Below the pieces are notes generated by a model, which was given only the letters and a program-made list of their open reading frames with translations, was not told the DNA's origin and did no database searches. The position numbers and the translations under genes were made by a program. A DNA stretch of 39,429 nt from Vitrella brassicaformis CCMP3155 (taxonomy: Eukaryota > Protista > Chromerida), in NCBI GenBank assembly GCA_001179505.1, contig CDMY01000629.1, positions 1 through 39,429 on the forward strand, read 5' to 3'. How positions within the stretch are numbered: position 1 is the first letter of the stretch; every line of letters begins with the position of its first letter. Shown here one piece after another: positions 3,657-30,600 of this stretch.

Positions 3657-5522
3657 GACACACCGAATTTAGAGGGTGGGGGAGCAGGGGTGAATGTGCC
3701 TTGGGAAAAGTCGATCCACCGGAGGAGTTGATGAGGGGCTCGCCGAAGGCCTCGCGCATCTTCTCATCGACAAAGGAAGCCGTGGATGGCACGGCAGGGC
3801 CAGCAGAGGGGGAGACGGCACCGATTCATCATCATCGCAAACGGCCGGGTCCGCGGGATACTCAAAATTCGTGCACGTGCCGCGCTTGCAGTTGACACAG
3901 TCAGTGCAGAGGCGCATCCTCGGCTGCATGTGGACAGCGCAGACTTCCCTTTCGCGTTGCATGCGCAACAGGGGAGCCCGCCGCCGTCTCGCGGGATGAG
4001 GGTCGCTGGAGGGGGCTGGGTGTAGTCCGACACACGCTCCCTCATCCGAAAAGGAGGAGAAACAGCCGAAAAATCACCGACTCAATCATTGGGCTATAGA
4101 TGGTAGAGAATGAATGAATGGTGTAGCAGTGAATGACTAGTCTTCGCTCTGTCTTTGCTGCACAGTCGATGCGGAGAAAGCAGGCAGGCAGGTAGTGTGT
4201 GTCTCTGTACAGACTTGTGTGAGGTATATCTCGCGAACCAGAGCAAGTGAGAAGACGGCTGTTTGAGTGGTTAAGGGGCTTTCCGTGTCGTTTCAGTTGG
4301 GGCTAGCCCGGTGCGTGTCTATCCAGTCGCTGCACAGAAAACAGTAAGGCAGACAATTGTTGTCGTCAGACAGAATTGAGTGAAGCACATCTCGCCAACC
4401 AGAGTATGAAGTGAGAGTCTTTTGAGTGAGGCTTCAGATGCGGCAGTCCGATCCGTGGTGGTGTCTTGGTTGCAGAGAAGGAGGCGAGTGGATGATGGGC
4501 TGTTGGAGGGGTGACAGTTCAGAATGAAGGAGAGTGAGGGAGGAGCTGCTGCTTGGTGTGAGTGAGGTTCTCACCTGGCCGGTTCACGTGACCTTTCCAT
4601 CAGGTGGGTGGGGTGTCTGTGAAATTTCATTTGAGGCGGCAACTCCGAAATGGGGAGTGGACCGGGAAAAAGTTTCGAGGCTCGATTGAATGGCAATGTC
4701 CAGCGAGGTTATTTGTTTATAGGTCGGCGAGGATCTCAGCTACCCCCCACCAGCGACACCGGCGGAGCTAGTCGCGCAGGGCCTCGTGACTCTGCCAATC
4801 ACATCAACCTACTGTCCTTCGGGACTCCTGTCTTCATCGATAACCCTAGTGGAAGAGGCGAGACACGATACATTGAATCGTCGCGCTTTTGCTGCACTCT
4901 TTAAACACCGTTACTGCCGCACGAAGCGGCTCGAGCCGGTTCCCAGGCGCCTCAAAGAGGGCCACCCCGCAACCACCTCTCCAAACACGGCCAAACACAG
5001 CCGCAGGAGCATACGAGAACATCTATGGCGAGCAGGCTGACGTGGCCACCCTCGCGACCGATTGAATTCCTCATCTTGATCATCAAACGCCATCGCCCGG
5101 AAGTATTGGCACTTGCTGACTCCCTCCGGGATATCCACCCAGTGCTCATACTGCTCCTTGTCCACCTCAGCAAACACTTCGGTCACCGAATCGTCACTTT
5201 GACCTGTGACAACCCGCCATTTCTGTGCGCGAGTGTCCCCGTTCCACGGAAAGTGCAACGTCAGAATTGTCACTTTGTTGTCAGCATCCAGGGGGCCGTG
5301 GGCGGCCATGCCGGCATCCCAGTCCAGGGGCCGTTGACTGCGCGATCAGTACCACGATATGAGCTCTAGCCTCCACTCTTCAGGTCCCAATCCATCCTTA
5401 TCAGCTCTTTCCCATCGCTCGTTGTTTCGATGTAGAAGGGATTGGAGAAGAGGTTGAAGAACTCGTCTCGGGTTAACCCCAGACAATACACACCGTTACC
5501 GTTGGGCACTCGTCTGTAGCTG

Positions 5523-6590
5523 TGTGGTTAAGTAGATGCATGAAACGGGCGACGAAGTTCGTCTAAGCATCAGTTCGTATCAAGCAAATGAGGCGAAACA
5601 ATACATGCAGAAACAACGGACAGCGCTCGTTGACTGCGAAAAACATGTCGCACACTGCAAACAAGCGCGAGACATGCAACATGACACGCACATTCAGAAC
5701 CCAAGTCCAGCCAGCCACCTTACAGCCCCGCAGCGGGACTGGTGTGGGGGCCTGTATGGCCCGCGGCTGACGAAGTCCTCCGGAAACGCGCTGGCCCTCC
5801 GTGGCCCTCTAGCGGCCGCCGCGCGCTGCGCACGACTCGCCACTTGAAACGCGTTGTGCTTCATCAGCTCGACGAACAGGAGCTGGCTCCAGTGGTTGAC
5901 GATGCTCTCTCGGAAAACTGTGTCCTCCATGGGAATGGATGTGGGGCGAGGCTTTCGCTTGGCGAGCATCTTGAGAAAATCCATGGTCTTGTCTCCCCAT
6001 CTGCCGAATGTCTCCACAGCGAGGGGCACGAAGCGGAGGCCGGCCGCTTGGGTGATTGGTCCATACTTGTCGATCTTGTCTTTCTCCGCAAGCTGAGCCG
6101 CCTTGCCACCTGGGAGCTGTGCACCACGCCGGTTGACTGTTCGGTGGAAGGGAATGGGGGAGTTGTCAGGGCGGCAGGGGTGGGCGACGGTGACGTCGAG
6201 CAGGTAATCACTGCCATCGATCACACAATAGATGTCCATGCGCTGGTTGTTGGAGTTGTCATCAGGCGGGGTGATGCCGAGGCTGTGCAGAGACACCTCC
6301 ACATTGGAGGGAACATCTGCTTCGGCCAGGATGCGAACAAACAAGTTGCGCATGTTGTTGTGTCTCGTGACTCGCTCACGGCCCGTGTGACACACGTAGA
6401 AGTGATCGCCAAACTTGTCCACCTCCCCGCCGCAGATGCATCGCTGCGAGACGGTTGCGTGCGGGAGGGCAATGCCGAGACACCCGGCGACGGCATGGCA
6501 ATACTGGAAGTTGTTCAGTGTCTTGCTATCGCTGGAAGGGATTGCTGACAGCCAACCAGAGGAAAGAGGCCCTTGGCAGCTCAGAAGACG
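5523..6590 (-). mobile_element. 5'-truncated non-LTR retrotransposon (CRE/R2-like, CCHC + restriction-like endonuclease C-terminus) with 4-bp TSD
   Basis: CICGGEVDKFGDHFYVC zinc knuckle, RHNNMRN, RMDI..LLDVTV, EKDKIDKY, FVPLAVETFGRWG; flanked by gctg at 5519-5522 and 6591-6594; the paralog reads AKGS-YRR uninterrupted at this site. Confidence 0.88.
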
Positions 6591-7303
6591 GCTGCCTTTG
6601 GCCCTCGCATAGATGCCTGTGTCGTATGAATGCACCAGACGTGCCTCCATTGGATGACCATGGCTATGGAAATCCAAGTCATACTCAACACCTCGTGAGC
6701 TATGCTTCCCTGTGGCGTTTATCGTCTCGAACCCGTTGTCAAACATGCTGATCCGGTATTTGCCGTCTGGTTTGCCCAGGTCTCTCACCTACATATTATG
6801 AAGCTACACGTGACCGCTACAGGAGTGTGGTCTCATGTCGCTCACGTCATGTTGCCCTGCGAAACGCCCTCTCGTATCGTCCATGATCCTAAACGTCGAA
6901 GAATTACACGACAAGGCCTGCACATTTTGTGACCCAAAGTCCAGCTCACTTGAAGTTTCCGCCCTTTCCACCGAGGCGCCACAGAACCTCGCCCGTATCT
7001 CTGCATATCGGCACGTACACGAGTCAGTGCTATGGATGGTTCTGAGCTAAAGCTGTCCGCACACCTTTCAATTTTGACAATTTGCGACATTTTTTCATTC
7101 TGAGCAATGCAGAAAAAGCAAGATGCGATGCATCGAAACCTGTTCGAGAGAATGTGTCAATGCGGGGCTCACGATAGCAGGATGTGGCCGTCGTGAGCTT
7201 CCTCTAGTGCTGAGGTCGGGAAATTCGCGGGGGAATACACGCACCCTGACGTTTGTAGCCTGTCTGTCTGTCTGTTTGTGTGTGGTTGGCTCTGCCTGTG
7301 CAG

Positions 7304-8675
7304 GTGGCCGTGTCGGACAGAAGAGCCGCCACCATGTGAACGACACCCTTCCCCTCCCACCCGATCCCCTCTCTCTCGATGCCGCCCAGACACAGGACAG
7401 CCGCTTGGAGGACACCGACGCCTGCCCGTCGGACCTGGAGCAGCGTGAGCAGGAGCTGCGGGTGTTCCGACGCGTGGTCTGGGGCAACGGGACGCTCTTG
7501 GTGGTGCGGATGTGGACCGACCCGTCCGCCCTGCCCCACTGGGTACCTCTCCCCTCCTTTGGCCGGCACGGAGTGACTGCGACGAACAGTGAGATACATG
7601 CCCAGCACACACTAAAGCCCTTCGTATTGGTGACGGCTGCTGTGCTGTATCAGGTTCTCATGGGGTTGTGACTCACCACATGGACGGCGAGGGGAATGGG
7701 GGGGAACCGCCACCTGCCGGGAGTCCTGTTGGGGGTGGAGCAGCAGCTGCAGCTGGTGCTCCTCAGGCCGCCGCAGATGGCGTCGAAGGTGTCGGCGGGG
7801 ATGGCCAGGTCCAGAACGCCGATCAGCCTTCTGACACAGAGGTGGGCTGCACTGGGGCAGGGGATGCATTCATGTCGATACAGTGGATGGCATGCCTTAA
7901 TTTCCAGGAGGAGATCTGTTCCGTGTGCGGGGCCGGCACGACGGACGAGCTGGGCCCCCCGCTGAGGTGTGTCGGCATTGCGGGGGCTGACGGGGATCGC
8001 TGCCCCACGTGCGACGGGGAGGCGTACAGACACATCGGGTGCTGGGGTAGTGTGGCCCTGCCGAGATGCGCAGGCTGTCGGGCGCTCAGTTCATCGGGAG
8101 CGGTACGAATACTGCTTTCGGAAGAGGTTTTTGATTCCCGCCCACGTGCTTTATGTCGCAGAACACTGATCTGCGGCAACAGGTCGACCAGCTACGCAAG
8201 GAACTGGAGAGGCTGCAGTTAGAAAACGCAGCCCTGCGAGCCACAACCAGTGCACGAGAGCACCACAGGTCCGTCACGCACCCGGGATTGTAGAGCCCGC
8301 TCACTCTCGTGTCTGTCTGTGTCTTGCCGTAGAATCGTGAGCGTGACGGCCTCACACAGGATGCCGAAGGTTGACAAGGGTTTCGTCAGCTACATGGACT
8401 ATCGAGAGGTGGCCATGTGCAGGTTGCCGGGCAAAGTCAAGGTTGTGTTCGAAGTGAGTAATCTATCCGCACATCGGCGTCCTACAGCGAAGATCCGCCA
8501 TTCACTCTTCTCTGATGTGTTGTAGGCCCACACGCTCTTGATGGACTGGAATAGCAGGCGCCCGAGTGGAGTGACGTTCTCCCGATACCTCATCGACCGA
8601 CTGGACCCCCTCCTGAGTCAACTCGAGGCGACCGTGGTAGAGCAGGATGGAGGGGGGGGGGGGGGGGTGGGGGTT
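7304..8675 (+). CDS. Captured gene fragment: PHD-like C4HC3 zinc finger + coiled coil, unspliced, lacking a first exon
   Basis: Exons 7304-7588, 7654-8102 (possible internal 66-nt intron), 8162-8268, 8333-8453, 8526-gap; all GT-AG with consistent phases. CSVC...CPTC...HIGC...CAGC followed by DLRQQVDQLRKELERLQLENAALR. Confidence 0.7.
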
Positions 8676-8975
8676 NNNNNNNNNNNNNNNNNNNNNNNNN
8701 NNNNNNNNNNNNNNNNNNNNNNNNNNNNNNNNNNNNNNNNNNNNNNNNNNNNNNNNNNNNNNNNNNNNNNNNNNNNNNNNNNNNNNNNNNNNNNNNNNNN
8801 NNNNNNNNNNNNNNNNNNNNNNNNNNNNNNNNNNNNNNNNNNNNNNNNNNNNNNNNNNNNNNNNNNNNNNNNNNNNNNNNNNNNNNNNNNNNNNNNNNNN
8901 NNNNNNNNNNNNNNNNNNNNNNNNNNNNNNNNNNNNNNNNNNNNNNNNNNNNNNNNNNNNNNNNNNNNNNNNNNN
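8676..8975. other. Assembly gap (300 N); further identical gaps at 22529-22828, 26235-26534 and 29509-29808
   Basis: Four N runs of exactly 300 nt, i.e. placeholder size. Confidence 0.99.
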
Positions 8976-10682
8976 GGGGGGGGTTGGGGTTTGTCGTCCC
9001 TGTCTGTTGTGTCGCATGTTGCGGTGGATGCATGGGTGGATGCAGATGTGTGTGTTCGACGGGGCTCCGAATCCGTGGAAGGCCAAGTTCGTCCCCTCTA
9101 GTGCTGAGTGGAATACGTCCCACAATTCGCCATCGTCATCATGAATCATTCCCGAAGTCTCCCAAAAGCTCAAAGGCAGATGGTCACCTGAAGACAGGTT
9201 GCGACTCGGCATTTATACACATCCTACCAATCCAACAGAGTAGAATACCTGTCTGCAGTGCCCATAACCAGTTTTATCCCCTGGGGTGCCCATAACAGTT
9301 GAAAGTCCTTACTGATTCGGTGGAATAGGAGTCGACTGCAAGAACACAAATTTGGAAGCACTTTCGCCTTCACTTACATCGCCAACAATTCGTTGCCTCC
9401 TCTCGCGAAACTCGTGCCCGTTGACGCAGCATTAGTTCGTGGGAGGTGCCATCCATCCGAATGTGTTGGGGCATCACATACCTCCTCCGTGTTTGGGAGT
9501 GAACCTGACTCGTTCGACATAATCAGGTCCGAGAACCATACTCTCATTCGCCCACGTCCTGATCTGCTCATGGTGTGAAGGAGCAAAGTAATGCCCCTTT
9601 CCAACCCAGACGGGATCGCCGAGCGGCGTCAGGATTAGTCCAATGTTCGGCCACATAAGGCCGGGTTCAGGTCCTCCTGCAAAGATGTAGCCAGCTGACA
9701 ATTCTTCAAGGTTGCCTCCAACAGTCACTTTAGCGCGGGGGTAGGCAGATGGGAGGGTCCTGACCAGAACAGGTGCAAAGCCAGGCTGACAGAGCTCAGA
9801 GGACATATCACCTGCATGAACAGTTGGGGATGTAGTACTCGCTCTTTATAGCTGTAGACTCCTTTTCGTCACAGTCGATGTCGTTGTGGTCGCCACCGTC
9901 CACTTTTCTCTTTCCCTCATGAATAGCAGAGATGCCTGACAGCCAATCGACATCTTGAGCCTTTCTGAAGAGTTCCAGTGTCTCGGGTGAAGAAGGCTCG
10001 TCAATGGCATTCTTTTGCGTCTTCGCCCCTTTGTATGTATCCATCTTGTTCCACGACATGGTAAAGCACCACGAGGAGGAAGGCAAGGAGTATTCCCCTT
10101 GACTTTGAATTCCTTTCTCTACTGTCACTCGAACAGACTCACCAGGTGTGAAAGGGGCGTCTGGCGTGAAATACACAGTTCGGCCGTCGCTCAGAAGCTT
10201 CGTGTTTCCCGTGTGGTTGCCGGAGGCGTCGCCTTGCACACTTATCTTGTCCTTGATGCTGCCTTTATCCACCTTGTCCTTCGGCCTGAAGGCAATTCAT
10301 GTGTACGGAGAGACGAGGACGGCGTTCGAGAGGGGATGAGCATAGACAAAGGGCGTCTCCCTCCTCAGAGCCTCCAGGTCGACAGAGGGCTCGAGGGTGT
10401 TCTTCGGGTCGTCTGCGTCTCTGAGGTTCGGCGGTCCCGCCCTGGGGTCGATGCCAGCGGCTTTGAGAGACCGAAGCAGCTGTTGCGCGTTCCGATCTGC
10501 CACCTCTTCGTCACTGATAGCGTGGCAATGTCGCACGACGTGTGTCGCACGCCCCTCTCAAATACAATAAAGACACACAGGCCATTGGGGTTCAATTCGG
10601 AACTGTTCGGAGAGGGAGAAGCAATTTGTTATAGGGGTCAGAGCGCCCACGACTGACCCCACGACCGATGCGGTAAATATCC

Positions 10683-11070
10683 ATGAAATTTCCCTCCTCC
10701 TGGCGGGACTCGCTCGCGTTCGCGAAACGAAATGCATGCAAAGCCCCCAAGCTCGCATGCAAGCCCCCACAAGGGAACCGAAGGAAGTGCTAGCTTGGCC
10801 CCAATTACGGACGGACAAACACTTTGTTTCGTATGAAATTTCCCTCCTCCGTCGGGCTGGCGGGACTCGCTCGCGTTCGCGAAAGAAATGCATGCAAAGC
10901 CCCCAAGCTCGCATGCAAGCTCCAAAAGGGAACCGAAGGAAGTGCTAGCTTGGCCCCAATATATATATCACGGACGGAGGAATTGTTTCGTAAGAGCGTG
11001 CCACGCTCGCTAAAAGCTCGCGAGTCCCGAAAGAGCGTGCCGCGCTCCGACAAAGCTCGCGAGTCCCGAA
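10683..11070. promoter_or_regulatory. Divergent intergenic region of the ASST pair with tandem repeats (2 x about 150 bp, then 2 x about 36 bp)
   Basis: atgaaatttccctcctcc...gtgctagcttggccccaat at 10683-10805 and 10833-10960; agagcgtgcc..gctcgcgagtcccgaa twice at about 10994-11070; atatatat at about 10961. Confidence 0.75.
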
Positions 11071-11348
11071 AGGTGTCATTGTGATTCGCAAAAATGACTC
11101 GCCGGCGGGTGGAACGACTGACTTCTCATGATAAAACAGTCTTCTTGCCAGCGTCAGGCAAGCCTTGAGTGGTTTTACAGGCACGAATACATACTATTGC
11201 AAGACGGCCAGAAAGCACTCTCGACAAACATGTGGATATTCGTTGCCAGGCATTTTCGTGTGCTCTCCGTCTGGCCGATCGCCTCCCATTACTCGGGGGC
11301 CCCTCCCCCCTCGTGACAGTTCGTTTGCGTGGGGTCCCATCGATTAAG

Positions 11349-13977
11349 ATGTCAAGCACTCTCGTTCTGCTGTGTATCTTCTGTATACAATGGCGTCAGG
11401 GCGGCGCCATCACTGATGGAGAAGCGGCCCAACGCAATACTGAACAAGTGCTACAGGCACTTAGAGCCATAGGTGTCGACCCCAAGAGAGGACCACCGCA
11501 GCTCAGAGCCGAAGACGACCCGAAGAATATTCCCAAGCCCTCTGTCAACCTACAGGCGTTGAGGAAGGAGACTCCCTTTGTCTATGCACATCCGCTTCCT
11601 GGTGCCATTCTCGTGTCTCCTCTGACGAGCATCGCTTTTCGGCCGGCGGACAAAGTGGACAGAGACAGCATTCAAAAAAAAATACTTGTCCGAGGTGATG
11701 TCTCGGGCAATCATGATGGAGAGACGCGGTTGCTGAGTGACCACCGAACCGTCTATTTCGTACCCGACGTGGCCTTCATGCCTGGCGAGTCTGTTAGCGT
11801 AATGGTAGAGAAGGGAATCATGACTGAAGATGGAGATTCACTCCCTCCCTCCTCGTGGAGCTTCAACATGTCATGGAGAGGCTTGGACACTTACCGCCGA
11901 GATGCAGGGATCAAAGTGCCAGAAAGCTCCATCAGTGAGGCTTCTTCGCCCGAGACGCTGCGTCTGTTTAGAAAAGCAGAGGCTTCTTCGCCCGAGACGC
12001 TGCGTCTGTTTAGAAAAGCTGAAGATATCGACTGGTTATTGGGCATCCCTGGTGTTGGTCAGCGAGAAACTGAGGCAGACGATATGGACGAGGTCAACGA
12101 CATCGATTGTGGTGAACCGGAGCCTTCAGATGATGAGAGACAGTTCTACGCTCCCAGCTGCTTGTACAGGCAAGATGAGTGATTCATTCAGGGTTATCCG
12201 TGGTCTGCTTCCTTAGTTTCATTCCGCTGCGTCCCCTTCAGGACTCTTCCTTCGAACTACCCCCGTGCGCGAGTGACTCTTCAAGGCAACCTCACAGAAT
12301 TGTCAGATGGCTACGTATTCACACTAGGACCGGAACCTGGGGGCCAAAAGCCTGTTTTTCACATCATCATGACAGCGCGGGGCGATCCAGTCTACTATGA
12401 TCGAAGCAGCGATCACCTCGAGCCTACGCACAACGGGCAGCTTACGCGGTGGTAGTCGGGACTACGCACACCGAGAACGCACATCAGGACTCGAGGAGGG
12501 GCCGCGAGGATCCTCGGTCCTGATTATGCCGAGCGGGCACGATTCTTCGTCAAACACGGAGGAAGTACGGACTGTTCCTAAGGTGCCACTTAATTGGCGA
12601 AACCTGTGTCACAGGTATGAATGGACACGACTTTCAGCTCACAAAAGATGGCAACGGACTGATGTTCACGTAAGTATCGCCTTTAGTTTCTGTCCTGGCC
12701 TCGCCGTTGCATCGCCAGAAGTATTTGCCACAGTGATATTTCGTGTCCTTGCATCAGCTATGATGTCCACATATTGAAGGTTGATGATTTCCATTTGGGT
12801 GTCAAAGGAGAGAAGGGCGTGATCGGCACTGCAGTCCAGGAAATTACCCCAACAGGAGAAGTTGTGTTCGAATGGAGATCATGGGACCACCTGCCGCTCA
12901 GTCTTTGGGAGAGTGAAGGGCGCCATCCCGAAATCTGGGACCTGTTGCACTCAAATGCGATTGTAGAAGCTCACAATGGCCATATCCTGCTATCGTAAGC
13001 TCTGTCTCGTTGAAGAATGAATAAGCATGATAGCTATCTTTTCAGGATGAGGAAAATGTCGCAGATTGCAAAAATCGACAGGTTCGAGAAAGGGTCAGAC
13101 GCAAGCCGTTCAAGAAGTGCATGTTGACGTGCAGAGATTCTGGTGAGGTCTTGTGGCGCCTCGGCGGGAAGGGAGGCAACTTCAGGTGAGCTCGAATGTT
13201 CAGGGAATGAAGTGCTCGTCTAGGAGCACATGTGTGTGTTTCAGAATCCTGAACGATACGAGAGGCTATTTCATCGGGCAACATGATGTGAGAGACCTCG
13301 GCAAACCAGAGGGCAAACAGCAAATCAGCATCTTTGACAACGGGGTTATCGCGGCAGACGGAAAAGCAAGGAGAGGATCACGAGGCGCTGAGTATGACTT
13401 GCATTTCGATAGCCATGGTCGTCCATTGAATGCCCGGCTGGTGAATTCATACGATACAGGCATCCTCGCATACGCGAAAGGCAGCTACAGGCGAATGCCC
13501 AATGGCAACGGTGTGTATTGTTTGGGGGTGGGTGTGAAGCAGCCGAGGGTATGGACTGCCAATCCTTTCTACATCGAGAAGGATTCCTCAGGCCGCGAAT
13601 TGGTTAGAATGGAATGGGATCTGCACGTGTACCGCCACTTTCTAGAAATCTATCGAGCGATCAAGGCTCCTTGGATCGGGACCCCTGCGTGGCCGCCGAC
13701 AGCTCTCTTGGATGACAATAACAAAGCGAAGACCCTTCGGCTTCATTTCTCTTGGAATGGAGCTACCAGGTTGCAAAGATGGCGGATTGTCACAGGTGAT
13801 AGCGCGAAAGAGCCTTTGACATTTGTGTATGCGGAGGTCGAGAAAAGGCAGTTCAAGCACTGGGTGAATATACAGGAGGGAATGGAGAAATGCCGGTACT
13901 TCCAGGCCATCGCTCTTGATGATGAGGGAGAGGAATTGAGCCGATCGCCTGTAGTTAAGACAACGCCATGTATGTAA
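11349..13977 (+). CDS. Secreted aryl-sulfate sulfotransferase (PAPS-independent ASST) with N-terminal Big_5/SbsA Ig-like domain (about 739 aa)
   Basis: Exons 11349-12169, 12242-12451, 12488-12564, 12615-12669, 12758-12994, 13046-13081, 13135-13185, 13245-13977 (2220 nt, in frame). Signal peptide; catalytic-type motifs NGHDFQLT, DLLHSNAI, SMRKMSQI, GQHDVR, ISIFDNG; W(R)LGG repeats of the beta-propeller. Confidence 0.88.
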
Positions 13978-14493: not shown

Positions 14494-15248
14494 GACTGCA
14501 AGAAAATGCATGTCGCACACTGCAAAGAAGCGCAAGGCATGCAGCCCAGCACACACAGCATCCAGATCCAGCGAGCCAACTCACATCCCCGGAGCGGGGC
14601 TGGTGCGTGGCCTGTAGGGCCCGCGGCTGACGAAGTCCTCGGGCAAACGCGCTGGCCCTCCGTTGCCCACTGGCGGCCGTAGGGCGTTGTGCACGACTCG
14701 CCACCTGGAACGCCTTCCAATGTGCTTCACCAGCTCGACGGACAGAAGCTGGCTCCAATGGTTGACAACGCTCTCTTGGAAAGCTGCGTCCTCCTCTGTG
14801 GGAATGGAGGTGGGGCGGGGCTTCCGCTTGGCGAGCACCTTGAGAATCCATCGCCTTCTGCCCATCTGCCGAGTGTCTCCGCAGCGAGAGGCACAAAGCG
14901 GAGGCCGGCTGCCTGGGCGGTCGGACCATACTTGTCGATCTTGTCCTTCTCCGCAGGCTGAGCAGTCTTGCCACCTGGAAGTTGTGCGCTGCGCCGGATG
15001 ACTGTCCGGTGGAAGGGGATGGGGGAGTCGTCAGGCCGGCAGTGGTGGGCGATGGTGACATCGAGCAAGTGGTTACTGCCGTCGATCACACAATAGATGT
15101 CCATCCACTGGCTGTTGGGTCGTCGTCGGGTGGCGTGACGCCGAGGCTGTGCACAAAAGGAGCAAACAAGCCAGACAGATTGTTGTCTCGTGAGTCGCTA
15201 CCGGCCGGTGTGACACACGCAGTAGTGATCGCCAAACTCTTTTGTCGT
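14494..15248 (-). mobile_element. Second, decayed copy of the same REL non-LTR retrotransposon family
   Basis: FGDHYCVCHTGR*, MDIYCVIDGSNHLLDVT, EKDKIDKY, FVPLAAETLGRW; stop codon, frameshifts and an internal deletion relative to 5523-6590; the proximal 3' UTR is also shared. Confidence 0.88.
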
Positions 15249-15250
15249 CC

Positions 15251-15470
15251 CACGTGTCAAGTGGCGGGTCTCTTTTGCACGCTTAGGAAGAAATACATTT
15301 GTCAGATCTATTGTTGCGCTTGAAGCCGGCGCCAAAAGCATTAGGGCCGCGACAGTGTTGCGCCCTGCCTCTGGTTGTGACCGGGGAAGGGGGAAGATTG
15401 AGACAAACAGAAGTCCACGTGTGTGAAAAAGGCATGTGTATGCCCTTGGCTTTTTCTCCTTGATCACCCA
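15251..15470. repeat. Dispersed repeat module D, direct copy at about 19597-19750
   Basis: Shared blocks cacgt..caagtg..ggtct.ttttgca, ggggaagattgagacaaa.agaag...cgtgtgtg.aaaa, tttctcct.gat. Confidence 0.7.
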
Positions 15471-17189: not shown

Positions 17190-17679
17190 CCGAACTTCGC
17201 AGACACAGAAGAGAGAGGCGTTGTTGTGTGCGAGATGTGTGTGTGGGTGGGTGGGTGGCGTGTGTATACACATGGTACCTTACCTGATGTCGATTCGCGC
17301 TGACGACCCTGACCACTGAGGCCACGGCTTTTTCACCGTCGTTGGTGACGGCAAACCTGATGCACGTAGAGATCTCATGCAAGCGACATCAGCGACGCAC
17401 ACAGCCAGATGGTCGTCATGTGGAAGGCACGATGCCGAACTTCGCAGACACAGAAGAGAGAGGCGTTGTTGTGTGCGAGATGTGTGTGTGGGTGGGTGGG
17501 TGGCGTGTGTATACACATGGTACCTTACCTGATGTCGATTCGCGCTGACGACCCTGACCACTGAGGCCACGGCTTTTTCACCGTCGTTGGTGACGGCAAA
17601 CCTGATGCACGTAGAGATCTCATGCAAGCGACATCAGCGACGCACACAGCCAGATGGTCGTCATGTGGAAGGCACGATG
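17190..17679. repeat. Near-exact tandem duplication, 2 x 245 bp, with a third partial copy at about 18144-18225
   Basis: ccgaacttcgcagacacag...tggaaggcacgatg starts at 17190 and again at 17435. Confidence 0.92.
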
Positions 17680-23422: not shown

Positions 23423-24207
23423 GAAGTGAAAGTCCTGACATGCATTGCCTTGATTCTTCTTGCAAGCCCGATCGCGCTTCTTTTTCCTCGACTCCCACCC
23501 GATCGGGTTTGCACGAAGAATTGCGTGTTGCAAACTGAGATTTGTGTGGTTATTGCTGGCAGGCGCCTCACGGGCCCCCGCCTACGTCTCTGCCCTTGCT
23601 GGACGACGATTGGCGGGCATCTTCGAGAATGTTGCACTGCAGCCAAGCAGAAGATCGAGCCGCTCTGCAACCCGGCGTCTAAAGAGACTAACAAGCTCAA
23701 GGCGATTGTCGAGACCATCACTTTTGAATGCTCTTCGAGGTACTTTGGAGGCACTTTGGTGGACAACACAATTGGCTCCATCGATTTTTGGCCTCACACA
23801 CCATGGCAGATGTGGGGGGGTTTGCCCTCACACACCAGGGCAGATGGGAGCCAATACATGATGCGATGGTGTGTGTGTGTGTCTGTGTGTGTATGTGCCA
23901 TTCGTTCTTGCGAAGCCGAGGCCCGAAGGGCCCAGCCTAAGCGTGGCCTCCCTCGTCTGTGTGTGTTCTCTGTGTGTGTATGTGTGTGCATCGTATGGAC
24001 ACCCCCATCCACCCCCTGCACTCATCGGTTGTCTCTCTCTCTCTCTCTCGCTATTTGTGTGTGTGTGTGTGTGTGTGGTTGATACGAAGGCGAGGCCCGA
24101 AGGGGCGAGCCGAGCCAAGCCAAGGCATGGTGTGTGTGTCTATGTGCAGCACATGATGGACACCCCCACACACACCTACTTGCCTTCTGCACTCATCGGT
24201 TGTCTCC

Positions 24208-24244
<37 letters not shown>

Positions 24245-27200
24245 TGGTGCGAAGGCGAGGCCCGAAGGGCCGAGCCGAGCGTGTGTGTCTGTGTGTGTGC
24301 GCATTCCACACACCCTCTGCACACACCCTCTGCACACATCGATTGTCTCTCTCTCTCTCTCTCTCTGTATCCACCAGGGCATGTTGAACCTTACTAATAC
24401 CATTTCACATGTGATTCAACATGTCTTTTGAGATTCTCCTTTGGAACAGACGCTCGCCTGCACCGCCGCGACGTGGCCAGCGACCGAGCCCTGCTCGCTC
24501 CGCCGCCTGCTAAGCGGCCAGACAAACTGGACAAGTGGGAAATCGCTCCCCATCTCCTTTTTGTTTGCTCTCGTTCACGCGCTGTGCGCGTGGGCTTCTC
24601 GCTAGTCTCATATGAAAAACCGTAACAAACCCTAGCGAAATCCTGGACGAGGCTTGCCCCGCCCTGCAGGCTCGCCCTTGCGATCGCCGAAGGCCGCAGT
24701 AGAGAATGAAGAAGGAAGGAGGAGGAGAAGGGATGTAGGGAGAGCGTTGGCGCTTGTTTTGGAGCGTTGGGGTAGGTGGGTGGGTGGGAGGGAGGGAGCT
24801 GACATGCATTGCCTTGCTGGGAGGGATTTTTCGTGCAGGCCCGATTGCGCTTCTTCTCCTCGGCTGGCACCCGATCGGGTTTGCACGAAGAATTTGTGGA
24901 AAAGGAGGGAGGAGAGGAGGGACGTAGGGAGGGCTCGAGCGTTTTGGCGCTCGGATGGCTTTCTTCTATGGGACTTCGCCAGCACAGAGGGACTTCGCAA
25001 TAAGCGTAGATTACCGGCGCCGCCCCGAGTCTCCAGAAATGTTTGAGGCAGGTGGGTGGGAGGAAGGGATGGAGGGAGGGAGGGATGGAGGGATGGCCTT
25101 TCATGTACTTTTCATGAAAGGCCTGACATGCATTGCAAGTACATGTCCTGCTGCCGCCTTTCTGTCTCTGTCTCTCTGTCTCTGACGTCCCGATGCTTGC
25201 AGGTCACGATGTGGAGGTTCGAGTCGTGTGGACGGCTGTGGCCCTGCTGGGAGACGGAAGTCATGGTGAGGAGACGCTGGCTCATGTGGTGCTCCGTGCA
25301 CCTGAATCGCCTCACCACAGTTTGGTTTTCCTGGTGGGTGGGTGGGTGGGTGGGTGGGGCGAGCACAGTGGAGAGACGAGCCGTGGGCACAGTCTGTGTG
25401 GTGTCGTGAACCGTGCAGACAGACGGTCCAGTCAATGTTGCCGTGGGCGAGTACGTGCTGTCTGTCACCTTTCTGTACCGACAGCAGCCCTTCATGTACG
25501 GGACAGTGAGCCAGTACAGGCAGTCCCTGGACCAGGCTCGCCCAGGCTCGCCCTACGGTCGATCCGAACACCGCAGTAGAGAATGACGAAGGAAGGAGGA
25601 GGAGAAGGGACGTAGGGAGAGCGTTGGCGCATGCGGAGCGTTATGGCAGGTGGGTGGGTGGGAGGGAGGCTGGAAGTGAAAGTCCTGACATGCATTGGCT
25701 TGATTCGTCGTGCAGGCCCGATCGCGCTTCTTTTTCTCGGCTCCCACCCGATCGGGTTTGCACGAAGAATTGCGTGTTGCAGACTGAGATTCGCCCGTCT
25801 CTCAGCTGCAGCTCCGCACTCATGAGCCAGCGGCCTTCAGAGGCACCCTCGCTACAGGCCGCTCGCGAGCATGACAGGCATGACGGCGAGGGCTCACCCT
25901 CCCACGAAATGCACATGCAGGACGGGGATGGCCATGGGGCTGCGCATTTCCACACTGGCCACGGGGCGGGGTGTGTGCGTGCCTCTGAGTGTTTGTTTTG
26001 TCTGGCTTTGGCAGGGGTGTATGCCGCATGGGCCGTTGATGGGATGGTGAATGATTAGAATGATGAGGGAGGGGAGGATGGCTTCGTTCCTTATCAGGTG
26101 AGGCGCAGCTCAAGACTGTAGCCATTGAATGATGTTTTGTATGGCTCTGTGCGGTCTGCGTAGGTCTTTGTGGTTATTGCTGGGAGGCGCCTCGTGAGCC
26201 CTGGCTCGGGCAGCGGAGGTTCGGGGCAGGTGGGNNNNNNNNNNNNNNNNNNNNNNNNNNNNNNNNNNNNNNNNNNNNNNNNNNNNNNNNNNNNNNNNNN
26301 NNNNNNNNNNNNNNNNNNNNNNNNNNNNNNNNNNNNNNNNNNNNNNNNNNNNNNNNNNNNNNNNNNNNNNNNNNNNNNNNNNNNNNNNNNNNNNNNNNNN
26401 NNNNNNNNNNNNNNNNNNNNNNNNNNNNNNNNNNNNNNNNNNNNNNNNNNNNNNNNNNNNNNNNNNNNNNNNNNNNNNNNNNNNNNNNNNNNNNNNNNNN
26501 NNNNNNNNNNNNNNNNNNNNNNNNNNNNNNNNNNCGGAGGTTCGGGGCAGGTGGGTGGGGGGGGGGGGGGTTGGTTACGGTGACGGGCCCTGGGAATGCC
26601 TCGCCCTCCGAGGGAGGAATTCTTCTTGCAAGCCCGATCGCGCTTCTCTTCCTCGACTCCCACCCGATCGGGTTTGCACGAAGAAATATACGATATATAT
26701 TGCGTGTTGCAAACTGAGATTCTGTGTGGTTATTGCTGGCAGGCGCCTCACGGGCCCCCGCCTACGTCTCTGCTCTTGCTGGACGAGGATTGGGGGGCAT
26801 CTTCGAGAATGAGCTGCAGCCAAGCAGAAGATCGAGCCGCTCTGCAACCCGGCGTCTAAAGAGACCAACAAGCTCAAGGCGATTGTCGAGACCATCACTT
26901 TTGAATGCTCTTCGAGGTACTTTGGAGGCACTCTGGTGGACAACACAATTGGCTCCATCGATTTTTGGCCTCACACACCATGGCAGATGTGGGGGGGTTT
27001 GCCCTCACACACCAGGGCAGATGGGAGCCAATGCATGATGCGATGGTGTGTGTGTGTGTCTGTGTGTGTACGTGCCATTCGTTCTTGCGAAGCCGAGGCC
27101 CGAAGGGCCCAGCCTGAGCGTGGCCTCCCTCGTCTGTGTGTGTTCTCTGTGTGTGTATGTGTGTGCATTGTATGGACACCCCCATCCACCCCCTGCACTC

Positions 27201-27388
27201 ATCGGTTGTCTCTCTCTCTCTCTCTCGCTATTTGTGTGTGTGTGTGTGTGGTTGATACGAAGGCGAGGCCCGAAGGCCCGAAGGGCCGAGCCGAGCCAAG
27301 CCAAGGCATGGTGTGTGTGTCTGTGTGCAGCACATGATGGACACCCCCCCACACACCTACTTGCCTTCTGCACTCATCGGTTGTCTCC

Positions 27389-27423
<35 letters not shown>

Positions 27424-27768
27424 TGGTGCGAAGGCGAGGGCCGAAGGGCCGAGCCGAGCGTGTGTGTCTGTGTGTGTGCATTCCACACACCCTCTGCACA
27501 CATCGATTGTCTCTCTCTCTCTCTCTCTGTATCCACCAGGGCATGTTGAACCTTACTAATACCATTTCACATGTGATTCAACATATCTTTTGAGATTCTC
27601 CTTTGGAAGAGACGCTCGCCTGCACCGCCGCGATGTGGCCAGCGACCGAGCCCTGCTCGCTCCGCCGCCTGCTAAGCGGCCAGATAAACTGGACAAGTGG
27701 GAAACCGCTCCCTATCTCCTTTTTGTTTGCTCTCGTTCACGCGCTGTGCGCGTGGGCTTCTCGCTAGT
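23423..27768. repeat. Modular repeat complex, family A (unit about 1.37 kb: H module, exon-like block, CA/GA microsatellite block, core, G module)
   Basis: About 23470-24606 directly repeated at about 26630-27768; H module (cccgatcgcgctt...cccacccgatcgggtttgcacgaagaa) at about 23468, 24840, 25717 and 26633; G module at about 24610-24790 and 25540-25670. Confidence 0.9.
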
Positions 27769-28179
27769 AATCCTTAAGAATAACTAGCGAGAGGCCCGCG
27801 CGCAATTTGCGCGCGCAAACAGATGCTCTAAGAAAGCCTCAGGCGCTGCTGGCGCGTCGCTTCGAGAGCCTTACGAAGAGTCAAGACTCGCCAACATGCT
27901 GGGTGGGTGACGAAGACGCCGTTCATCGATGTGTTTTTCTCAAGTGGGTAAGCGAGTGATACAGGGCATCAGCGTCGTGTTACGCGTTTCGGCGATGATT
28001 GAGTCATACCACACGATGCTGCCGATCCGGACGAATTCGACGTACGTGTTGTGTGTTGGTTGGTGTTCAGGAAGGCGTCCACATGTGGCCCCACGGAAGA
28101 GCGCTGAAGGCATGCAGATTGTCATGCGTTTATGTGGACGCGTGTCTGTGCTCATCAAGAACTTCGTGAATGATGCCAT

Positions 28180-29106
28180 GACAGACTCATGTCACATTGT
28201 GTCTGACGCGTGAACGACCTCATGTTGTTACCTGATGCGCGAGTGAGTCCAGTGTCTCTCTGTCGGCACGGTATGCCAAGTGCAAGCCGATTAACTCGGA
28301 TGAAGTCCACTTGCGGCGTGTTCACGCAGGTACGGTCGCGTCAAACCTCGGCGAGATCTGTCCAATTGTCCCTGCGTGACACCCTCTTCTCTAAATGCTC
28401 GGCGGTCGCCTCCTGGTGCCTTCCACGCTGCGCTGCCTCCTCTCGGTCGTGCGTCGCACTATGGTTTCTCTACGTCGGCGTCTGGAGCCTGTCTGCAGTG
28501 GGTCGGGGATCGGTAGGGTTTGTTACGGGTTTTATTGCGTCAAACCTCGGCGAGATCCGTCCAATTGTCCCTGTCTGAACAAGCTGGGCGGTCGCCTCCT
28601 GGTGCCTTCCACGGTGCGACGCTGCCTCCTCTCTCGGTCGTTCGTGCGTCGCCCACTACGGTTTCTCTACGTCGGCCTCTGGGGCGCGGCCTCGGTCCAG
28701 CGATCGGCGATCGGTCGGCGATCGGTAGGGTTTCTTACTTTTTTTCATATAGACTGGCGAGAAGCCCACGCGCACAGCGCGTGAACGAGAGCAAACAAAA
28801 AGGAGATAGGGAGCGGTTTCCCACTTGTCCAGTTTGTCTGGCCGCTTAGCAGGCGGCGGAGCGAGCAGGGCTCGGTCGCTGGCCACGTCGCGGCGGTGCA
28901 GGCGAGCGTCTGTTCCAAAGGAGAATCTCAAAAGACATGTTGAATCACATGTGAAATGGTATTAGTAAGGTTCAACATGCCCTGGTGGATACAGAGAGAG
29001 AGAGAGAGAGACAATCGATGTGTGCAGAGGGTGTGTGGAATGCACACACACACACACACACACGCTCAGCTCGGCCCTTCGGGCCTCGCCTTCGCACCAC
29101 ACACAT

Positions 29107-29143
<37 letters not shown>

Positions 29144-29231
29144 CAACCGATGTGTGCAGAGGGTGTGTGGAATGCACACACACACAGACACACACGCTCG
29201 GCTCGGCCCTTCGGGCCTCGCCTTCGCACCA

Positions 29232-29268
<37 letters not shown>

Positions 29269-30600
29269 GGAGACAACCGATGAGTGCAGAAGGCAAGCAG
29301 GTGTGTGGGGGGGTGTCCATCATGTGCTGCACACAGACACACACACCATGCCTTGGCTTGGCTCGGCTCGGCCCTTCGGGCCTTCGGGCCTCGCCTTCGT
29401 ATCAACCACACACACACACACACAAATAGCGAGAGAGAGAGAGAGAGACAACCGATGAGTGCAGGGGGTGGATGGGGGTGTCCATACAATGCACACACAT
29501 ACACACACNNNNNNNNNNNNNNNNNNNNNNNNNNNNNNNNNNNNNNNNNNNNNNNNNNNNNNNNNNNNNNNNNNNNNNNNNNNNNNNNNNNNNNNNNNNN
29601 NNNNNNNNNNNNNNNNNNNNNNNNNNNNNNNNNNNNNNNNNNNNNNNNNNNNNNNNNNNNNNNNNNNNNNNNNNNNNNNNNNNNNNNNNNNNNNNNNNNN
29701 NNNNNNNNNNNNNNNNNNNNNNNNNNNNNNNNNNNNNNNNNNNNNNNNNNNNNNNNNNNNNNNNNNNNNNNNNNNNNNNNNNNNNNNNNNNNNNNNNNNN
29801 NNNNNNNNAATTTTGAACTCGGATGAAGTCCACTTGCGGCGTGTTCACGCGAGTACGATCGCGTCAAAGCTCGGCGAGATCTGTCCAATAGTCCCTGTCT
29901 GAACACGCTCTCTAATGCTCGGCGCATGACAGACTCATGTCACATTGTGTATGACGCGTGAACGACCTCATGTTGTTACCTGATGTGCGAGTGAGTCCAG
30001 TGTCTCTCTTTCGACACGGTGCGCCAAGTGCAAACCGATGAACCCGGATGAAGTCCGCTTGCGGCGTGTTCACGCAGGTACGATTGCGTCAAACCTCGGC
30101 GAGATCTGTCCAATTGTCCCTGTCTGAACAAGCTGGGCCGTCGCCTCCTGGTGCGTTCCACGGTGCGACGCTGCCTCCTCTCTCGGTCGTTCGTGCGTCG
30201 CCCACTACGGTTTCTCTACGTCGGCCTCTGGGGCGCGGCCCTCGGTCCGGCGATCGGCGATCGGTCGGCGATCGGTAGGGTTTGTTACTTTTTTTTATAT
30301 AGAGTGCGAGTGAGTCCAGTGTCTCTCTTTCGACACGGTGCGCCAAATGCAAACCGATGAACCCGGATGAAGTCCGCTTGCGGCGTGTTCACGCAGGTAC
30401 GATTGCGTCAAACCTCGGCGAGATCTGTCCAATTGTCCCTGTCTGAACAAGCTGGGCCGTCGCCTCCTGGTGCCTTCCACGGTGCGACGCTGCCTCCTCT
30501 CTCGGTCGTTCGTGCGTCGCCCACTACGGTTTCTCTACGTCGGCCTCTGGGGCGCGGCCCTCGGTCCGGCGATCGGCGATCGGTCGGCGATCGGTAGGGT
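28180..30600. repeat. Repeat family B: 319-bp tandem unit (starts at 29985 and 30304) with degenerate copies at about 28240-28740 and 29815-29925
   Basis: gtgcgagtgagtccagtgtctct...cgatcggcgatcggtcggcgatcggtagggttt repeated. Confidence 0.9.
28753..29508. repeat. Inverted copy of family A (right arm of a long inverted repeat with 27151-27768), truncated by gap
   Basis: Reverse complement of 27151-27768 with an extra internal tandem block of about 126 bp; spacer 27769-28752. Confidence 0.9.

Follow-up and report, generated by a model that had tools for sequence, protein, structure and literature searches.

The stretch of DNA analysed here (the window, 39,429 nucleotides) is the whole of contig CDMY01000629.1 of the chromerid alga Vitrella brassicaformis CCMP3155, and it carries two diverged arylsulfotransferase-like (ASST-like) paralogues arranged head to head, which are of the PF14269 type and bear a Big_5 domain towards the N-terminus. 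One of these paralogues, copy A, is interrupted within a coding exon by a segment of DNA (7215-9094, further called the insert) that is framed by a perfect 14-bp direct repeat, and the origin of this insert is the subject of the present report. Copy B is uninterrupted and appears intact; its exons match PF14269 with E = 1.7e-5 and 4.2e-4, slightly below the gathering score when they are taken as single exons. In copy A an in-frame TGA (10297-10299) replaces the AGC of copy B and, by comparison with copy B, one base pair is deleted near 5294; copy A is thus a pseudogene. As it already has a stop codon and a frameshift, copy A tolerates insertions, and relative to copy B it has three of them: a fragment of a retrotransposon (1068 bp), a 57-nt piece and the insert itself.

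The window contains just two copies of the exact 14-mer CCTCTAGTGCTGAG, one at each edge of the insert (Table 1), and none on the opposite strand. Position 7201 of copy A corresponds to position 12966 of copy B, and there copy B follows copy A on the left side as far as the repeat and then passes directly into the counterpart of the right flank. When the insert is removed, the protein across the site reads WDVFHSALE-EAHDGHILLS in copy A and WDLLHSNAIVEAHNGHILLS in copy B, and the Pfam ASST match in copy B crosses the empty site without a break. Since copy B and this match are continuous at the site, the event was an insertion into the coding exon of copy A, the duplicated 14 bp are native exon sequence and the uninterrupted state is ancestral; a deletion in copy B is ruled out by the same unbroken profile. 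A preliminary description of this DNA, made from the sequence alone, had reported the perfect 14-bp duplication as well as the lack of terminal inverted repeats (TIRs) and of poly(A). Both observations hold, since the exact 14-mer is present twice with an empty site in copy B, a search of 7215-7300 against 9010-9094 detected no inverted repeat joining the ends, and neither end of the insert has an A-run in its sequence.

Table 1. Features of the insert and of its surroundings in the window
Feature	Position	Strand	Remarks
Left copy of the 14-bp duplication	7201-7214		native exon sequence of ASST-like copy A; copy B has one diverged counterpart, to which it aligns
Inserted DNA	7215-9094	+	1461 bp read, 300-N placeholder, 119 bp read; absent from copy B
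Right copy of the 14-bp duplication	9095-9108		exact match to the left copy; established by comparison with copy B
Intron-like leader	7215-7303	+	89 bp, pyrimidine-rich, (CTGT)n tract, CAG acceptor
Putative exon E1	7304-7588	+	94 codons; one confident beta-hairpin in model; no family match
Putative exon Ea	7654-7841	+	low-complexity, Gly/Ala-rich; in-frame ATG at 7680
Putative exon Eb	7908-8102	+	C4HC3 order of four Cys/His pairs; spacings atypical; no PHD recognised
Putative exon Ec	8162-8268	+	leucine-zipper coiled coil, four Leu at heptad spacing, charged
Putative exon Ed	8333-8453	+	no match anywhere searched
Putative exon Ee	8526-8675	+	reaches the G-rich gap edge
Assembly gap, 300 N	8676-8975		placeholder length; G-rich runs at both edges
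Right-hand piece of the insert	8976-9094	+	found once in the genome; not similar to the LINE 3' end
R2-like non-LTR retrotransposon, 5'-truncated, within copy A	5523-6590	-	1068 bp, 3' part; 4-bp duplication (CAGC)
ASST-like copy A, pseudogene, insertion host	4911-10522	-	collinear with copy B; three insertions relative to copy B
ASST-like copy B, uninterrupted	11346-13977	+	empty site at about 12949-12966

The insert was compared with the whole genome assembly of V. brassicaformis CCMP3155 (72,700,666 bp in 1064 scaffolds). BLAST searches with its two readable parts, 7215-8675 and 8976-9094, recovered the locus itself only, a 24-nt pattern of the left terminus occurred once in the genome with up to three mismatches allowed, and protein searches with the putative exons E1, Ea with Eb, Ed and Ee (E up to 1) again led to the same locus alone. 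The sister copies and the donor gene for which a genome-wide search of termini and cargo had been proposed are absent from the present assembly. The insert is GC-rich, with (CTGT)n and G-rich tracts, and its ends read GTCGGG (left) and TTCGTCC (right). Neither end, in either orientation, is similar to the 3' end of the resident long interspersed nuclear elements (LINEs) described below, and tRNA and Rfam searches of the insert gave no match. Pfam detected neither a reverse transcriptase (RT) nor a transposase in the readable open reading frames (ORFs) of the insert, of which about 330 codons are visible beside the placeholder gap; a tyrosine recombinase of the Crypton-like type likewise had no Pfam match within these codons, the placeholder at 8676-8975 being unread.

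The retrotransposon fragment in copy A belongs to an R2-like non-LTR (long terminal repeat) LINE family for which the genome gave at least 135 matches, some copies being 96-97% identical at the DNA level. Longer copies contain ORFs of 1196 and 2190 amino acids with a reverse-transcriptase domain, and the closest solved relatives of these ORFs are R2 proteins. The 3' end of the family reads ...CATCTACTTAA, followed by 0-15 variable bases and lacking poly(A), with a short A-run in one copy. The target-site duplications (TSDs) of the family were measured on 5'-truncated copies, the ends of which were set against longer copies, and had lengths of 4 (the copy in the window), 8-11, 10, 11, 12 and 13-14 bp, while no duplication was seen in three copies and the boundary was occupied by N in another three. 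The 14-bp duplication around the insert is of the size class that is left by target-primed retrotransposition of the resident LINEs (mostly 10-14 bp).

Several minor observations concern the same LINE family. The 3' end and the TSDs were observed at loci that include L023 (C608), L025 (C737), L034, L037 and L040, and the LINE copies at C77 and C926 have the same 5' truncation point with different flanks. Within copy A an upstream ASST exon runs in frame into the C-terminal region of the LINE, which gives a chimeric ORF of 364 amino acids (5694-6788). Just downstream of ASST copy B, on the minus strand at 14494-15300, lies another fragment of the family, which is more diverged.

The insert itself can be read, on the plus strand and thus antisense to copy A, as a stop-free chain of six putative exons with compatible phases, separated by five GT-AG introns of 65, 66, 59, 64 and 72 nt. 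The fragment seems to begin within an intron, because the 89-bp leader ends in a CAG acceptor. The preliminary description had regarded it as an unspliced gene fragment that starts inside an intron, and this view stands in part: the six-exon chain and its acceptor-like leader are present, but chains of this kind are common in controls. With a limit of five GT..YAG introns, each 55-75 nt long, and a spanning path required, a chain was allowed by 24% of dinucleotide shuffles of the cargo, by 21% of start points on the contig and by the minus strand of the cargo. Consistent phases by themselves are weak evidence in DNA as GC-rich as this, and the phase-consistent exons were dropped as proof of a gene. 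The support for coding is narrowed to the leucine zipper, which is a generic one, and to an uncommon Cys/His cluster: among about 200,000 six-frame residues of the scanned loci, only two places had four Cys/His pairs within 60 residues, the other case being a LINE zinc finger. That second cluster is located in the N-terminal part of the long LINE copy L024 (C381), on the minus strand near 7804, and no similarity between it and the cargo was detected. We consider it fairly probable that the cargo codes for protein or did so until recently.

Domain and protein searches, which were run on whole ORFs as well as on single putative exons, placed the cargo in no protein family. A word-index protein search, phmmer against 1.84 billion protein representatives and two scans of metagenome contigs provided no relatives of the cargo proteins. 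The PHD-like finger and the chromo-like segment that had been proposed from the letters alone did not withstand these comparisons. In Pfam searches with E up to 10 neither PHD (PF00628) nor chromo (PF00385) was detected, PDB sequence and Atlas searches with E1 and Eb gave no matches, and a Foldseek search with the E1 model was empty. The single-sequence AlphaFold models had a pLDDT (predicted local distance difference test) score of 37 for Eb and of 61 for E1, with one beta-hairpin as the sole confident element. A PHD finger was rejected for Eb, which has the right C4HC3 order but spacings (x24, x6, x8) that are atypical for PHD, no profile or PDB match and a poorly scored model, and a chromodomain, the fold of which is a three-stranded sheet plus a helix, was rejected on the same empty Pfam, PDB and Atlas results, with the lone hairpin and the Foldseek search adding nothing in its favour. 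The predicted coiled coil is retained as a generic leucine zipper and nothing more specific.

The middle of the insert is occupied by one of the four gaps in the window, each of which is exactly 300 N long. The CCMP3155 assembly was built from short reads with velvet (k = 75), SSPACE, gap fillers and REAPR, and it contains 3113 gaps with 931,689 N in all, about 299 N each (Woo et al., 2015; PMC4501334). Because all gaps in the window are of 300 N and the mean of the assembly is about 299 N, the size of the gap at 8676-8975 is a placeholder, and consequently the length of the insert, its continuity and the reading frame across this interval are not fixed by the sequence. The G-rich edges suggest that a low-complexity tract was left unassembled.

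The explanation that we favour, and that holds about half of our confidence, is a one-off capture or relocation of a unique DNA fragment that was end joined at a staggered break, and not the insertion of a member of a transposon family. A single event would have brought nuclear DNA that is unique and looks native, at least 1.58 kb of it, into the exon of copy A, and the captured DNA probably holds a part of an intron-containing orphan gene. The 14-bp duplication would then be the filled-in stagger of the target break, which was possibly opened by the LINE endonuclease and subsequently closed by fill-in and end joining; the fragment could either have been relocated or have been captured from a donor that was later lost. 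We infer a DNA fragment rather than a mature RNA, since five putative introns are kept. The copying mechanisms, i.e., retroposition, orphan transduction and templated repair, are disfavoured, because each of them leads one to expect a donor and none was found. Capture is also consistent with the fragment ends, which disregard gene boundaries, and with the fact that a member of the LINE family has inserted in copy A as well.

Several points weigh against capture at a LINE-type break. In the assembly neither a donor nor a deletion scar was found. The sole tie between the break and the LINE enzyme is the size of the duplication, and the LINE copy that resides in copy A has a duplication of only 4 bp. 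The placeholder gap could hold an enzyme gene or much more DNA, and a short-read assembly with this many gaps may simply omit other copies. Moreover, the evidence comes from one case, known from the assembly sequence only.

One may ask if the LINE machinery itself copied the fragment. In this explanation, which we regard as unlikely, the R2/CRE-like LINE machinery acted in trans and reverse-transcribed an unspliced pre-mRNA, or an unspliceable antisense transcript, into a nick, leaving a 14-bp TSD and a 5'-truncated copy. The duplication lies within the range measured for the family, the cargo begins at an arbitrary intron-like point, as 5' truncation would give, and the absent A-tail is no objection, because the resident LINEs lack poly(A). 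However, the donor should remain in the genome and none was found at the DNA or the protein level, both ends of the insert are unlike the LINE 3' end, on which such RTs normally depend, and the five kept introns speak against an mRNA template. Target-primed retrotransposition, which had been raised in the preliminary description, therefore stays live through the match in TSD size, yet is unproven. The insert is not a LINE copy in the ordinary sense, as it has no LINE 3' end and no RT in its visible ORFs, though its TSD (14 bp) lies within the resident size range; a processed retrocopy was rejected since the five intron-like intervals are kept and an A-run is absent.

The suggestion that the insert is a low-copy or novel transposon, for instance a tyrosine-recombinase element of the Crypton-like type or one of another class, with its enzyme gene in the gap and other copies absent or unassembled, appears quite unlikely. 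It would account for the clean flanking duplication and for an intron-containing ORF of its own that runs into a gap whose 300-N length is a placeholder. On the other hand, the insert is present in a single copy, its termini are unique and not inverted, no recognisable protein family is present in the visible codons, and the ends of the fragment respect no gene boundaries. A TSD of 14 bp is not known from any DNA-transposon superfamily. A more specific version, in which the insert is a copy of a very low-copy chromerid mobile element with duplications of about 14 bp, no TIRs or poly(A), an intron-containing zinc-finger/coiled-coil gene and a catalytic gene in the gap, is highly improbable.

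Known classes of elements were considered in the same light. Pack-MULEs (gene-carrying Mutator-like elements, MULEs) and gene-carrying DNA transposons resemble the insert in that they bring genic DNA with introns and are flanked by a duplication. The TSD of MULEs is, however, 8-11 bp, whereas the insert has a 14-bp TSD, lacks TIRs, and is found once in its body as well as in its termini; a Pack-MULE or another MULE was rejected on these grounds. Such an element is unlikely on prior grounds too, because in the Vitrella table of transposable elements cut-and-paste DNA elements are almost absent, LINEs being the largest classified class (632 kb; PMC4501334 supplement). The proposed mobile element with a Pack-MULE-like capture of genic DNA is thus unsupported, the cargo and termini being single-copy, with no donor found and no visible transposase or RT, and so is the proposed new class that would move chromatin-reader modules, for which no profile test supported the domain labels and no further copies were found. 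An introner was dismissed as well, given the single copy and the lack of a GT/GC...AG pair at matching offsets of the two repeats on the host strand. As no GT-AG pair excises the insert exactly, it does not act as an intron of copy A, which is in any case a pseudogene. Helitrons leave no TSD and have 5'-TC and 3'-CTRR ends with a hairpin, while here a 14-bp TSD is present and the ends are of another kind.

An artefact of assembly or scaffolding, in which contigs were misjoined or a junction is chimeric, is very unlikely. The short-read velvet assembly, the gap inside the feature and the G-runs beside it would speak for such an error; but each junction is internal to a contig assembled at k = 75, one exon is divided over the two contigs, its halves ordered and oriented as copy B predicts, and an identical 14-mer is present at both junctions. 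It also seems highly improbable that a circular DNA fragment was integrated by a crossover at 14 bp of chance identity, so that the repeat is shared homology and not a stagger: the end product would be identical, and by an arithmetic estimate a 2-kb sequence shares something of the order of a thousand chance 14-mers with a 72.7-Mb genome, which makes sites of this kind available, but recombination at 14 bp is inefficient, the circle and the donor are both without evidence, and the match to the LINE TSD size would be left as a coincidence.

Among the systems with which the insert may be compared, the 5'-truncated R2/CRE-like LINE insertions of Vitrella are alike in their 10-14-bp duplications, their lack of TIRs and poly(A), their arbitrary 5' end and the use of the same host gene. 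The insert differs from them in that it carries neither an RT nor the 3' end of a LINE, is without further copies and keeps introns of the spliceosomal type. In Daphnia, sequence gains flanked by short direct repeats have reportedly been explained by filler DNA or ectopic DNA that was captured at double-strand breaks. Filler capture of this kind shares with the insert a unique sequence of unclear origin, short flanking direct repeats and no transposon hallmarks, although the 14 bp observed here are at the long end and the insert is not excisable as an intron. In human L1 orphan 3' transductions, unique DNA that is not LINE sequence is inserted with a TSD by the LINE machinery. Such a transduction needs a donor beside the source LINE and a poly(A) tail, neither of which was found for the insert.

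At this locus a pseudogene has received an insertion that is present in one copy and has an orphan cargo and an unread middle, and a new class of elements is unsupported. The locus offers a datable example of how insertions accumulate in a pseudogene of a compact algal genome: copy A has taken up part of a LINE, an intron-like gain of 57 nt and the unique fragment, and copy B provides an internal empty-site control only 4 kb from the insertion. If a relocated or captured piece of a gene was indeed joined at a LINE-type break, this would be a record of genic DNA shuffled in association with LINEs in an alga closely related to the apicomplexan parasites. The event would gain wider importance only if a replicating element were revealed.

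Other features of the window may be briefly mentioned. The 57-nt piece specific to copy A (6789-6845, minus strand) starts with GTGAG, ends with TAG and has a short GTGAG-GAC repeat at its flanks, so that it looks like a recent intron gain. The spacer between the divergent ASST genes contains tandem repeats of about 150 bp (10683-10950). Farther along, long direct and inverted repeats with arms that are 98-99% identical extend over 23600-30600 and include three placeholder gaps, and this arrangement may be partly an assembly problem. Finally, an exact tandem duplication of 245 bp is located at 17190-17679.

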